Origin: Kudoa neothunni
Taxonomy: Eukaryota; Animalia; Cnidaria
NCBI GenBank assembly: GCA_964304625.1
Contig: OZ199838.1
Coordinates: 15,179,650-15,243,649 of the forward strand
Length of the DNA stretch: 64,000 bases
Direction: 5' to 3'
The position numbers and the translations under genes are program-made. The notes under the pieces were generated by a model that saw only the letters and a list, made by a program, of their open reading frames with translations, was not told the DNA's origin and made no database searches. This document shows, in pieces, positions 15,863-55,538 of the stretch. Positions within the stretch are counted from its first letter, which is position 1. Each line of letters begins with the position of its first letter.

Positions 15863-16260
15863 CAGTGCAACCTCGGACTTCGACCATAGTCCATTCTACA
15901 GGTGTATTTGAATTCTGAATAATTTTTTTCACTGCAAATATAATTAAAATTAATTTAATGCGTTGTGGCGCATCAAATAAATGACTTTTTTTTATTATTA
16001 TTTATGAAAAAACATTCGTACCCTGTGTTTATAAAATATACCAAATAAATATTAAATATAATAATAATGGAATATAGGATAAATATGTTTTGGTTGTCAC
16101 CCAATAGATAATAAGAGTTTCTCTTTCGATGACGTTCGCACAGTTTGATTGAACGACTTTTCTCCTAGAATTTCTTTTCTTCTGTGTCTTTAACACTAAC
16201 TGGATTTGTTCTGAATATCCATTCTATGTGCTCGAATTCAAAAGTGTTTCTGAGTCAAAA
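15863..16260. mobile_element. Tigger/pogo-type MITE (uninterrupted copy)
   Basis: TA|CAGTGCAACCTCG...CGACCATAGTCC start; alignable along its length with 51849-52029 plus 54070-54106 plus 54234-54390. Right boundary approximate. Confidence 0.7.
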
Positions 16261-44065: not shown

Positions 44066-46589
44066 CCTTCCGAGCATTTTTGGGGTCCATTGGACCCCAG
44101 CACGAATGTCGAGGGGGTTTTGCGGATCATCCATTGTCTAAAATGCCGACTTTACTATTATTATTCCTCTAAAAATAAATAAATTTTTCGAATATTTTTA
44201 ATTATTTGAGGTTTCCCTCTTATCGAGATTTTCTATCAATTTTGTACATCTAACGTTTTATGGGGTCCAGCGGACCCTACATTTTTTTTATAAGAAATTC
44301 TAAAATTATGAAAAGAAAAATTTCAATTTTATAACAAATTTTATCGTTGCAATCTATTAGATAATTCAAGTTTGTTGGTTTCCGTAGGTGTACGATGTCC
44401 CCGATTGCATCTTTGTCGTGGAATGGAAGAGATTGATCACCAATTTCCTACCACCGATGAATCCAATTTCAGCGAACTTGAAGATGATTATTTGGATGAA
44501 TGTTCATCTTCATCTACTATTGATTCTTCCGATGATTTTGATCACAACAATTTATACGTGGATAAAAATGATGTGTTGTGGACATCAGTTTCCCGACCAC
44601 TACAAAATTTAGAAAAGACAATATGATGACGACAAAGCCAGGCATAACTGCATATGCAAATTCAAGAATTTGTAATATTTATGATCGTTTTACTTTATTC
44701 TTCAATGATAAATTTGATCAAACCGTCATTGCAAATACGAACAAATATGGAGCTTTTCATTAGGGTGAAAAGTGGAAGATGCTAAATATTATTGAATTTA
44801 AAGCGTACCTTGGTATTTTAATTTATATGTCAATATTCAAATCCAAAATGGAATCTCTCAAACAATTATGGAGTATTGATAAAGGGCGTGAGATTTTCCG
44901 AAAGATTATGCTATTGACCAGGTTTACACAGATTAACAGAAGCCTCCATTTTGATGATTATGAGACTAGAGAAATGTGTAAGATCAACGACAAATTCTGC
45001 TACATAAGGGATGTATTTGAAAAATGGAAAAATATTTTACCCATGTGTTTAATTCCCCGTGATGATCTAACTGTTGATGAACAACTAGTTGCATTTCGTT
45101 GTAGATGCTCATTAAAACAGTATATGCCGTCCAAACCAGCTGTGTATGGCATAAAATTTTTTCTTCTAACAGATCCGATCACCAATTTTACTCACAATAT
45201 ATCTGTCTATCTCGGTAGAAACAAAAATGCCCAAAGAGCAAAAAATGTTGGAGAAAATGTCGTTTTGGATCTGTGTCCGCATTTAAAAGAAACCAGTCGA
45301 AACCTCGTATGTGATAACTCTTTCACATCGGTTTCATTGGGGGAAAAAACTTCTTGATCTAAATTTAACATTGTTAGGAACACTCAGACATAATAAAAGA
45401 GACATCCCGCCTATTTTAAAGCCCCCAAAATCAAGAAATGGGTTTTCCTCTGTTTTTGCATTTAATGGCGAAAATATGTTACTATCATATGTACCAAAAA
45501 GGATTGAAGCAGTTATTTTATTAGCTACGTCTTCCAACAACACAAATATTATAGATGATAAAACAAAAAATCCTGAAGTTATTGTGGACTACAACAAAAC
45601 CAAAGGAGGCGTGGATACGATCGATCGAATATTTTCAATGGCGGGTTTAAAAAGATATACCAAAAGGTGGCCAATGGTGATTTTTTACTACATGATTGAT
45701 ATAAGCCTGGTAAATTCCTATTACTTATACAAAGTCATTTTCAAGGACCCCAATATCTCAAGAAATCAGTATTTGGAACAGTTGGCAGATTCATTAATCA
45801 AACCTTTTGTTGGTGGCGATGAATCTATTCCATTCGATGAAAATACTCTCTGCATTGAAGAAAAGGTGCAACATTTGCGCTAGGTTATCTGGTAAGAAAA
45901 ACAAAAACACGCTGTCATAAACGCTCGAAACATTGCTGCAATAACCATTCAAAAATCATTAGTTGTAACTGTGTAGATCAATCTAAACATTAATTTAAGC
46001 TTCCATTTTGTTTATTACTTTGTTCTTATTGATACATTCTTCAGTCATAAATGTAAAATCGCAGTAGATCATAGGGCAAAATGTATATCTGAATAGCCAA
46101 TGTTACCAAAATTAGGTGTCATTGTGATTATTATATCTGAGATGATAGAAATAAAACGGTTGAAACACATTGTAAATATATTTATAACTTGAAGAACGTT
46201 TTATATTTGAAATGGTACGAAAATAACGCAATAAATTCTAATAATACCATAATTTATTAATATTCTACCAGCTGACTTTAAAATATATCAATGTTAATTT
46301 GTTTCTAGTTATAATTTTTAGATATTATTTTTCATTATACGAAGCGATTTAATCGATCTAAATTAGACAAATAACGAAAATAAATCGTAATTTGCCATTC
46401 GGTGATTTCCGGTGTTTATCGGAAGCGCAGTATTTTAGAATTATTATTATTTTTCCCTACGATAGATTTTTTTTAAAACTGAGGAACTTCTTTTTACAAT
46501 TTTTTAAACGGAATAAACGAACAAAAACCTGGGTTCCATTCGACCCCAAAAACGCTTGATGTATAGGCGGTTTTGGCCTGCTCGGAAGG
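44066..46589 (+). mobile_element. piggyBac, full length, frameshifted transposase (about 44423-45993)
   Basis: Perfect TIR CCTTCCGAGCA with TTAA on both sides; GGGGTC-N5-GACCC palindromes; LTVDEQLVAFR..QYMPSKP, NLVCDNSFTS, YNKTKGGVDTID and Cys-rich domain relic. Confidence 0.97.
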
Positions 46590-46621: not shown

Positions 46622-47862
46622 TAGGGTTTTCCGAGCTTTAGTGACATCATGCCAAGCATTAGTGACACGTACGTAATTTAAGCTTATAATTAAGTTCACA
46701 TTGTAAATTAATCGGGTAAAAATAATACGAGTGGTATAAATTTAACATTACACGTTAGTTTAATATTTATGAACTTTAAAAACAGATAATAGCGACGATT
46801 CTCAAATGAAAACTCGAACCAAATTTATGAGACAAACAATAAGTGACCGAGATAGGAAAATGATTGCTGATCAGTGCGAATTGGGTTACAGCAACGCCGT
46901 CATCGCTAAAAATGTTGGAATTAAGCGACAAACTGTTGCTTCAATTGTAAAATCATATCTTCTCGATGGGAAAGAAAATTCATTAAAAAGGGGTGGTGAC
47001 TTTTCTTCAAAACTCGATGAAGATCAAGAGTTGCGGATTAGAAGTTGGGTGGATGAGGACGCCACCATTACCCTTAACACTCTTCGTCAAAAACTATTAG
47101 ACGAATGTGGCATGAGTGTTAGCGTTAGCACAATAAATAGATGCCTTAAAGAATTCCATTATTCTTTAAAAATGCTCACCATTGTTCTTGAACGAAGAAA
47201 CTCAGACGATACAGTAGAAAAACGTTTTGTGTACACCCAAGGGTTCAATTCAAAACTGTTTGAGGCAGAAGGCACCAACTTTGTTTTTATTGACGAAGTT
47301 GGTTTTAATGTATCGTCACGTACAAGACAGGGTCGTTCGCTTGCTGGCACATCAGCATGTGTAAACATAAAAGCCGTCAAGTCAAGGGACATATCCGTCA
47401 TCGCAGCGATGAATAAGTATGGCATGGTGCTATATAAAATAAATTGGAGACCAGCAAATGGCGAAGATTTTAAAGAGTTCCTCATTGAGTTGGCAGATTT
47501 GTGCCGTTCTTTGGAAATTGAAGGTCCATGCTTCATACTCGATAATGCAAGGATACATCATTAACGGGGACTTGGCGAAATGAAAGCGACCTTTTAAATT
47601 TAATAGATGATGGTTTCAAAGTTATTACCACCAACGACTTCTCAAGTTATTATCGAAAAATGCTTCGATATATCAGCAGATGTTTGAACCGAGAAATTAT
47701 TCTAGAATAAGTATAAATTATACGATAGTGTTTGAATATCTTTTTCAAATTCCCAAAATTATTATTTTTTGTTCATTCGAAATTTAAAGTAATATTTTCG
47801 CATTTTTTTCCTAATTATATAGCTATCTTAAATACCTTGTCACTAAAGCTCGGAAAACCCTA
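46622..47862 (+). mobile_element. IS630/Tc1-type element with truncated transposase (46806-47564)
   Basis: Perfect 25-bp TIR TAGGGTTTTCCGAGCTTTAGTGACA with TA TSD; HTH region, FIDEVGF and LDNARIHH, then a stop and loss of the segment carrying the catalytic E; C-terminal YYRKMLRYISRCLNREII relic. Confidence 0.95.
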
Positions 47863-48069
47863 TAATAGAAATAAAAATTATTTATTTCATTTGAATATTC
47901 TTAGTAACTAATTTCAATTAAACAATTTTGCATATTAGTTGTATTAATGTTAGAAAGTTGAACTAAAGCTATTTTTTAACCCAAAACTCCTTACATTAAT
48001 GTTGTGTTTTTCACTGGCGTATTTTTCTTTAAAATCGTTAATTGTGTTAGGCCAAAAACCATTAATTAC

Positions 48070-48198
48070 TGTAACATGTGGATTACAAGAGTTGTAATCC
48101 ACCAACCATAAATGCGCGATCAAGAACACTGCGGCGTGGCACCACCGCCTTGAATGCTAAGAACCCAGGTTCGAACCCGGTTCGGACCTTGTGTTAAA
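48070..48198 (+). mobile_element. 129-bp solo-LTR-like element containing a tRNA-like cassette
   Basis: ATTAC|TGTAAC...GTTAAA|ATTAC (5-bp TSD); perfect 11-bp hairpin GTGGATTACAA-GAG-TTGTAATCCAC; box B GGTTCGAACCC; homologous to 54107-54233. Confidence 0.75.
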
Positions 48199-48422
48199 AT
48201 TACAAGTGTGGATTTCAAATTTTAACTGGTGTTATGTACATAATCTCTTCCCAGCCCTGTACACAAACCTGGTAATTAGTTGAGTAATCCATTTAATTCA
48301 TTTTTCATAATCATTGTATTTTTGTGTCAACGTGTTTTCCCTTGCTAACGTTTTGCTAAACTTGGAAACAACAACTGGGTTCTTAGATTTGGAGTTATTC
48401 CCTCCCATAACAATAGACGATA

Positions 48423-54106: not shown

Positions 54107-54233
54107 TGTAATACAAGCTCGGAATTGGGATTCGAAAATGCGTTATTAACATTAAAATCGGTGGTGCCGTCCCGCTCTGCTCTCGATCGCGCATATGATT
54201 GGTAGATTACAATCCTTTAATCCGCATGTTACA
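54107..54233 (-). mobile_element. 127-bp solo-LTR-like element containing a tRNA-like cassette (second copy)
   Basis: TGTAA...TTACA termini; flanks TGAGA/TAAGT (3 of 5 match, decayed TSD); alignable end to end with 48070-48198; absent from the empty MITE copy at 15863. Confidence 0.75.
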
Positions 54234-55538
54234 TAAGTATTTTTGGTCGTCGTACGATACATAATAAAGGTTTTTCTTTCGATGACGTTCGCACTATTTG
54301 ATTGAGCAAATCTCCTTCTAGAATTTCTTTTCTGTTTTTTTCTTCAACTGGGTTTGTTCTGAATACCCTATGTATGTGTTTGAACTCAAAAATATTTTAA
54401 TTTGAAATCAAGTATTACGCCAAGTATAAAAACATCTATTTGAATATTTCTCGTAATAAAATCAACAACGACTATAATTCCATTTTTTGTAAATATGCGA
54501 TGAATTCTTACTTGTGAAATACTATTTTGCAATTATTTAATGTTTCAAAGAATAAGACTAAAAAAATCGAACAAATTTAACAAATTTGTCCGAAATTGGA
54601 CATCATTAGCAAAACTGATAATGAGATCCCCAAGCAATCATTTATTTTTGATACCTAGATAATTTGAATTTAATTCAAATACATATAGTGTGGATTCCAT
54701 CTGAGTATTATTGACAAATAATTTACTTCAGTAAATAGATTAAAGAATAGATGGGAATAAAACATTAAATTACGCAATATCGAGACTTTACTGCATGTAA
54801 AATCGATCATGATGCATTTTGAGCAACTTTTTGAGGTCCCCACGAGATTACGGGACATCGGACTTCAACTACCTATTGTATAATAATCAAGTGTAATTGT
54901 GATTTATTGGTAGTTCAAGAAACCGAGGGGAAATTTAAAGATATACACTCGATTTTAAATATACGTCATAGATGCTATACTCGTTCTTCTGAAATATTTG
55001 AGTTGGAAAATTCAACTTCTAATTAAACAAATTCATGTGCTTGATTTTTTATAGCTACTTTGGGCGTATAATCCCCAATGACCTGAGTTTTATGATAGTT
55101 AACTGCTATAATTATTCGTGCGGATTAAATATTACTTAAAAGTTCCTAATATGCCTTATAGAAATAATTATGGGTATTGTAAAAATTTTTAATCGTTGGT
55201 TCATCGTGGCAATCTTATTCGGTGCAATGATATTCATGTTTGGCGTAGCTCCTCTAAAAACATTTTTGGGGTCCTAGAAATTATAAAGGAGAAAAGTAAA
55301 ATGGGTTTACCCTATTAAGTTATTCAACCTGAATAAAAGTAAATAATTTACAGATATGATGTTTCAATGAATTTCATAGAGCTGCTAAATTTTATTATCA
55401 TGTAATGAGTTTCTACGCTCACTCTATTTTACTTAAAATGCTCATGTCCTTCATTTCTGCAAACAGATAGCTTTTATGGACTCAATAAAAATATCATAAG
55501 AGCTTATAAAATAAAATTATTTCTAACAAGATAAATAA

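Follow-up and report, generated by a model that had tools for sequence, protein, structure and literature searches.

A probable solo LTR of a miniature, Helenus-type retrotransposon with a tRNA-like module in the genome of the cnidarian parasite Kudoa neothunni

Introduction

Which kind of mobile element left the short repeat that begins at position 48070 of a stretch of 64,000 nucleotides from the genome of Kudoa neothunni (here called the window)? A preliminary description, made from the letters of the window, recognized a family of LTR-like mini-elements of about 128 bp, each combining a hairpin with a tRNA-like Pol III cassette, and interpreted them as solo LTRs of a tiny non-autonomous retroelement that was possibly an undescribed lineage. 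A short dispersed repeat with tRNA-like content may also be a SINE, and one with inverted tips and TSDs of a fixed length may be a MITE; within an LTR, moreover, a tRNA-like patch may be a working promoter or a fossil. We followed the element through its own genome with the aims of establishing the boundaries and abundance of the family, finding complete copies from which solo LTRs could derive, identifying autonomous elements that might mobilize them, and assessing how far the tRNA-like module resembles the tRNAs of the same genome. Our analyses indicate that the window copy is very likely the solo LTR of a non-coding TRIM of approximately 0.5 kb, presumably left behind when a complete element's two LTRs recombined with each other.

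Methods

All searches were made in the genome from which the window is taken, which comprises 40.3 Mb in 4 contigs. A sequence-only model of the family (family A) was built on 23 aligned copies and applied with a cut-off of ≥50 bits, while the majority line of the alignment served only as a yardstick. The ends of TSDs were set from the alignment of each copy to the family majority line, together with the alignment of the flanks. The tRNA-like module was compared by local alignment, with 200 shuffles, with the genome's own 39 detected tRNAs; 38 of these genes are found by the Rfam tRNA model, which missed tRNA-Leu(AAG).

Results

Anatomy of the window copy

The positions of the window copy and of related features are given in Table 1. 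The copy begins with TGTAAC and ends with GTTAAA; since other copies of the family end in GTTACA, the right tip represents a C-to-A change. These tips, the TSD ATTAC and the 11-bp hairpin had all been recorded in the preliminary description and are present in the letters. Divergence from the family majority line is about 10% (K2P). The surroundings of the copy are rich in transposons: a piggyBac-type transposase domain (DDE_Tnp_1_7, E 2.7e-15) lies in an ORF fragment at window positions 45311-45883, and an ORF of 252 aa at 46806-47564 contains an HTH and a truncated DDE_3 domain (Tc1/mariner-like, E 2.8e-10).

Table 1. Positions of the mini-element copies, their parts and related elements (plain numbers refer to the window; C1 to C3 denote contigs).
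Feature	Position	Strand	Remarks
Solo LTR, family A	48070-48198	+	129 bp; 108.3 bits to the sequence-only family model
Left TSD copy, ATTAC	48065-48069	.	Identical to 48199-48203
Right TSD copy, ATTAC	48199-48203	.	Directly abuts the element 48070-48198
Hairpin	48078-48102	+	Perfect 11-bp stem, 48078-48088 / 48092-48102; 3-nt loop
Degenerate tRNA-derived module	48127-48188	+	From D-loop-like block to 3' acceptor-like strand
B box motif, GGTTCGAACCC	48168-48178	+	Inside the tRNA-derived module
Second, older solo LTR, family A	54107-54233	-	97.5 bits; K2P 0.158 from the majority line
Empty-site paralogue of the host repeat	16075-16079	.	Single TAGGA where filled copies read TACGA-LTR-TAGGA
Loci with the flanks of 54107-54233	L002, L005, L011/L012, L020, L024, L028, L029, one copy each in L037 and L038		
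Two-LTR element L035	C1:17132860-17133372	-	513 bp; one complete copy found
L035, 5' LTR	1073..937 of L035 locus	-	137 bp
L035, internal part	Between the LTRs		246 bp, non-coding
L035, 3' LTR	690..561 of L035 locus	-	130 bp
TT family, helper candidate	Three sites		GCGTTACA-TT-TGGTGACAGGGG; terminal hexamer, spacer and PBS as in the mini-element (GTTACA-TT-PBS)
TT family, copy	C1:13462281-13466489		RT and integrase in one open frame of 1117 aa
TC family, helper candidate			Spacer TC; at least 8 equal-score copies; same tRNA-Leu(AAG) PBS
Sister family B	L090-L109, e.g. C1:15262897-15263011 and C3:4155612-4155725		LTR-like unit of ~115-127 bp

Extent, boundaries and age of the family

Similarity search with the window element in its own genome returned 40 scored matches of 77-86% identity, and the sequence-only model raised this to 119 matches of at least 50 bits, located on three contigs. 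The unit is approximately 131 bp long and its tips are sharp (TGTAACA...TGTTACA): when 30 copies were aligned with 40-bp flanks, similarity started exactly at TGTAACATG and stopped exactly at TGTGTTACA. Neither an A-rich tail nor a ladder of 5' truncations was found among these 30 copies, their 5' ends being invariant. The TSDs are 5 bp long. Among 22 independent copies they are perfect in 12 (attac, caaat, ctttg, gtaag, caaga, gtaaa, aataa, gtatt, gaaag, gaaac, ataaa and tttat), match at four of the five positions in 5 more and are decayed in the remainder. Variable TSDs, A-rich tails and a lack of fixed TG..CA ends, which the preliminary description had named as arguments against its own LTR reading, were looked for among the aligned copies and none was found.

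Family A is old, with dispersed copies lying at a mean K2P of 0.116 (~12%) from the majority line. For a short variant, approximately 118 bp from end to end, K2P over the first 105 nt is no more than 0.02-0.06 and the TSDs are perfect, from which we take this variant to be the last wave of the family. The hairpin stem is intact in 96% of cells over the 23 copies; compensatory changes in the stem were sought in the same copies and none was found, so that the hairpin gains no support beyond conservation of its sequence. The LTR as a whole folds better than its shuffles (z = -4.6), an excess for which the inverted tips account in part.

Several irregular copies were also seen. At least 9 model hits end at about positions 86-102, breaking just after the anticodon-like TTTTAATG. 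Two such broken copies were read (L040 440-664 and 7317-7586); one holds a MITE of ~96 bp, with inverted ends and a duplication of ~7-8 bp, and the other a replacement of ~170 bp. Because the copies read hold these other insertions, the idea that the breaks are the work of tRNA-targeting non-LTR elements was dropped; other elements seem to land preferentially in the AT-rich loop of the LTR. Pairs of LTR copies with equal scores, 4-50 kb apart, occur at L036 (C1:14020381-14024816), C3:9792965/9837796, C3:8381363/8409449, C1:8996936/9046432 and C2:9457130/9476528. In the pairs that were read (L036, L011/L012 and L016/L017) the flanks are identical as well, which marks them as recent segmental duplications and not as new insertions.

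An older copy in the window, with an empty site

The preliminary description had named a diverged second copy in the window, and this is confirmed as a member of the family on the minus strand. Its flanks recur on both sides at at least 10 further loci, indicating one old insertion that was multiplied along with a larger host repeat; in copies of the host-repeat sub-group the flanking 5-mers are TCCTA and TCGTA, matching at four of five positions. The argument from an empty site, also made previously, holds good. Window positions 16079-16249 match the right flank of the LTR (54233-54397) with 76.6% identity over 171 bp, the alignment ends no more than 1 base from the LTR boundary at 54233, and TAGGA (TCCTA in reverse) stands at this point once only. 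Likeness on the left side of the empty site was judged by eye only, in sequence of low complexity.

A complete element with two LTRs

The preliminary description had predicted copies in which two LTRs enclose a PBS beginning TGG and a PPT, and such a copy exists at L035. It accounts for two model hits (C1:17132860-17132989 and C1:17133237-17133372), which form the sole same-strand pair among the model hits that is separated by a few hundred bases. Its LTRs are direct repeats around a short non-coding internal region, in the order LTR-TT-TGGTGACAGGGGT...GGGGAA-LTR, so that a TRIM architecture is present; after the TT, the internal part begins with TGGTGACAGGGGTTG, and it closes with GCCCGGGGAA. 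The PBS, TGGTGACAGGGGT, is found 2 nt past the 5' LTR and is an exact 13-nt complement of the 3' end of tRNA-Leu(AAG) with its CCA. The genome contains one exact 3' end of tRNA type that fits a pattern derived from the PBS, GGTTCGAATCCCACCCCTGTCA, and the tRNA that carries it was identified by ARAGORN as tRNA-Leu(AAG) at C2:3778286-3778367. The PPT, GGGGAA, consists of only 6 purines and abuts the TGTAAC of the 3' LTR. The outer flanks of the element, tcaaa and ttaaa, match at four of five positions and the flanks of each single LTR are unmatched, as is expected if LTR, internal part and LTR integrated together as one unit.

For a family of about 119 copies in a genome of 40 Mb, we estimated that some 0.07 same-strand pairs less than 400 bp apart would arise by chance, and a 13-nt primer match exactly 2 nt past the LTR is, on our estimate, far less likely by chance than the pair itself. 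The LTRs of L035 are 84% identical (K2P 0.19), which shows this copy to be long dead, and a genome-wide search with its 246-bp internal part found no further copies. The TRIM structure consequently rests on one old locus, and for each complete element, of which there is one, family A has about 117 solo LTRs. Other pairs that might have been taken for full-length elements were rejected: at L036 one solo LTR was copied by a 4.3-kb segmental duplication, its flanks being identical and its TSD aataa; the same-strand pairs L037 and L038 are independent solo copies; and L039 (C2:3736303-3736920, minus strand) is one copy split by an insertion of ~476 bp. At the two junctions of the latter insertion some 13 bp of the LTR are duplicated, which points to a different mechanism with long TSDs.

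Autonomous elements with the same junction signals

Other LTR elements of this genome have LTRs of 78 bp and 129 bp, TG..CA tips, a PBS beginning TGG and TSDs that are also 5 bp long (atcga and tctgt). The pattern ACA followed by 1-2 nt and TGGTGACAGGGG occurs 18 times in the genome, against 0 occurrences of a reversed-pattern control, and leads to two families, distinguished by their spacers as the TT and TC families. Downstream of the three TT sites the LTR-end motif is met again after 4200, 4208 and 3019 bp (that is, 4.2 kb in two copies and 3.0 kb in one), and the copy listed in Table 1 has an RT match (RVT_1, 146 bits) at 13463738-13464220 and an integrase match (rve, 66 bits) at 13465280-13465576. 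In the TC family, open frames reach 1259 aa and include RT and integrase. At least 7 of its copies contain, about 0.5 kb past the integrase, the exact 12-mer GGGGAATGTAAC, in which GGGGAA is joined to TGTAAC; this 12-mer has 10 exact occurrences genome-wide, one of them in the mini-element. In these elements RT stands upstream of integrase, which is the order of Ty3/Gypsy or BEL/Pao and not of Copia.

These two RT/integrase families are candidate helpers of the mini-element, on a comparison of junction motifs alone. The likeness is divided between them, the 5' signal being that of the TT family and the PPT with the start of the LTR being that of the TC family, and neither is known to have both. 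Of the earlier expectation that autonomous elements would share the TGTAAC/GTTACA ends, what was found is GTTACA in the TT family and TGTAAC in the TC family; both ends in one family were not. Near-identical RT/integrase LTR copies with the tRNA-Leu(AAG) PBS and the GGGGAA/TGTAAC junction lie at C1:3345022-3348707 and at least 7 similar loci, and this family looks recently active, to judge from the identity of scores.

The tRNA-like module and a sister family

No tRNA was called in the LTR by ARAGORN on the window, nor did Rfam at E≤10 find a tRNA in any copy in the window stretch and 20 loci. Comparison with the tRNAs of the genome gives a different impression. The best match of family A is the T-arm region of tRNA-His, at 23 of 24 positions (score 43, against a shuffle mean of 20.4 and maximum of 36), and the next is tRNA-Arg(UCU), in an alignment of 52 columns from D-loop to T-loop; both scores exceed all or nearly all shuffles. 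As a likeness between sequences, the tRNA-like module is statistically real. Its T-arm is nearest to tRNA-His and the module as a whole is nearest to tRNA-Arg(UCU). As a source, tRNA-Lys(UUU) was set aside, given that its case is the loop CTTTTAA, weak by itself, and that the loop of tRNA-Arg(UCU), CTTCTAA, is one base away and belongs to the best whole-module match. The majority line has a canonical B box (GGTTC) and a degenerate A box, in which TRGCY..YGG is only partly matched, and its anticodon-like loop, which lies between the two boxes, contains TTTT, a possible early stop for Pol III. The tRNA-like character reported in the preliminary description accordingly stands as regards the B box and a likeness to the genome's tRNAs above shuffles, and fails with the tRNA finders, ARAGORN and Rfam, which reject it.

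Approximately 30 weak model hits (31-45 bits), matching the model from about 9-16 to about 109-130, represent a sister family, B. Its tips are roughly TGTAAT...ATTACA, its hairpin is that of family A with small indels, and its module aligns with tRNA-Arg(UCU) over ~57 nt, with a score of 25 against a shuffle maximum of 18. At least 10 copies of family B are embedded in a larger repeat, conservation of which extends over all of the 700 bp examined. The block from D-loop to anticodon loop is the best conserved between the two families, at 24 of 25 positions, and together with the canonical B box this hints at constraint on master copies. In the youngest sub-group of family A, which is the short variant of ~118 bp, the 3' half of the T-arm is lost and the B box is weakened. 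Families A and B together contribute about 150 tRNA-like LTR patches to this genome, outnumbering detected tRNA genes by approximately 4:1.

Discussion

The preliminary description read the window copy as a solo LTR, and this interpretation is strengthened by a two-LTR copy equipped with PBS and PPT and by elements encoding RT and integrase that display the same junction signals. The life cycle that these features suggest would begin with an RNA running from the 5' LTR into the 3' LTR, which would be packaged by proteins that an autonomous LTR retrotransposon supplies, and we infer such mobilization in trans. tRNA-Leu(AAG) would prime minus-strand DNA at the PBS, two bases past the 5' LTR, and the purine run GGGGAA would prime the plus strand. 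The helper integrase would then recognize the TGTAAC...GTTACA tips and insert the DNA with a staggered cut of 5 bp. Solo copies would finally arise when the two LTRs of a mini-element recombine and one LTR is left.

Two entirely different modes of transposition have been weighed against this. Given a genome rich in MITEs and transposases, a unit of ~130 bp with 7-bp terminal inverted repeats (TGTAACA/TGTTACA) and TSDs of fixed length has the outward form of a MITE, that is, a non-autonomous DNA transposon moved by cut-and-paste with a DDE transposase that leaves 5-bp TSDs. However, the repeats of L035 are direct and not inverted, a tRNA-Leu PBS and a PPT lie exactly at their junctions, the same junction motifs occur in elements that encode RT and integrase, and no transposase-bearing element with the ends of the family was seen; we therefore consider this origin very improbable. 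A SINE of the usual tRNA-derived kind, for which a non-LTR (LINE) retrotransposon does the copying, would explain the tRNA-like content, but it is scarcely credible where there is no A-rich or simple-repeat tail, where 5' ends are sharp and invariant and TSDs fixed at 5 bp, and where the tRNA-like part occupies the 3' side of the unit instead of its head.

What the tRNA-like module does within a solo LTR is a closer question. By analogy with Cassandra and Helenus, the module with its B box may well have acted as an internal Pol III promoter for a short RNA, a reading to which we would give a chance approaching even. Its rival accepts the TRIM solo LTR but regards the patch as a fossil, inherited for example from an old SINE or tRNA fragment, with the RNA being made by Pol II or by read-through; this we hold to be plausible at rather less than an even chance. 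Rejection of every copy tested by tRNA finders, the degenerate A box and the run of TTTT before the B box are all in keeping with a fossil, as is the ability of the ~118-bp variant (K2P 0.02-0.06) to spread with perfect TSDs despite the loss of part of the T-arm and its weakened B box. Conversely, the block shared by families A and B at 24 of 25 positions and the canonical B box in the majority line of family A speak for constraint on master copies. An unlikely extension of the promoter reading is that the ~150 LTR B boxes serve as dispersed Pol III/TFIIIC sites and that TTTT is a leaky terminator, which would set the R region of a Pol III-made RNA; if true, this would add a detail of mechanism that no Helenus-type element has yet had worked out.

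In annotation, the ~150 tRNA-like patches should be listed neither as tRNA genes nor as SINEs. Like tRNA-derived SINEs (SINE2), family A is short and dispersed and contains an A/B-box region that derives from a tRNA, and it differs from them in its TG...CA tips, fixed 5-bp TSDs, lack of a tail and possession of a two-LTR form with PBS and PPT. Its integration chemistry is of the integrase type and not target-primed reverse transcription. The plant TRIM Cassandra resembles family A in having a Pol III promoter module of small-RNA-gene origin in each LTR, no coding capacity and dependence on a helper, although the module is derived from 5S rRNA in Cassandra and from tRNA in family A; Pol III transcripts of Cassandra are stated to exist (PMC10886601), whereas family A is known from sequence alone.

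The closest published counterpart is Helenus/TRIMp3 (Kojima 2024, PMC10886601), a TRIM whose LTRs include tRNA-derived sequence and enclose a PBS and a PPT, which has left many solo LTRs, whose total length is 311-1263 bp and whose TSDs are of 4 bp in animals and 5 bp in fungi and plants (PMC10886601). Gypsy elements are the presumed helpers of animal Helenus families, use of Pol III by Helenus having been inferred and not shown, and the animal hosts are listed in six animal phyla that do not include Cnidaria (PMC10886601). Family A resembles Helenus in its two short LTRs with sense tRNA-derived sequence and a GGTTC B box, in its short non-coding internal part with a tRNA-complementary PBS and a PPT, in a total of 513 bp that falls within the published range, and in its many solo LTRs with TSDs; in neither does the tRNA part work as a tRNA, and for neither is a long similarity of the LTRs to those of the presumed helper known. 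It departs from animal Helenus families in having TSDs of 5 bp instead of 4 bp (PMC10886601), from Helenus more generally in an A box without the full TRGCY..YGG pattern and in the survival of a single full-length copy, and from the listed hosts in that Kudoa neothunni is a cnidarian, outside the six animal phyla. A conserved 25-mer of the family had no match in metagenome contigs, and no paper on such elements in myxozoans was found in the literature.

The suggestion of a novel system was too strong in view of this published architecture (PMC10886601), to which the preliminary description had itself pointed: family A is a new member of the known Helenus/TRIMp3 type and represents no new class of system. 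Its origin is likely to be independent of the known Helenus families, to which it is likened by architecture and not by Repbase sequences. Helpers of Helenus-type elements are mostly unknown (Kojima, PMC10886601), and an explicit, testable pair of helper candidates is useful for that reason. Family A extends the class of miniature LTR retrotransposons with small-RNA promoters, to which Helenus and Cassandra belong, to the very compact genome of a cnidarian parasite.
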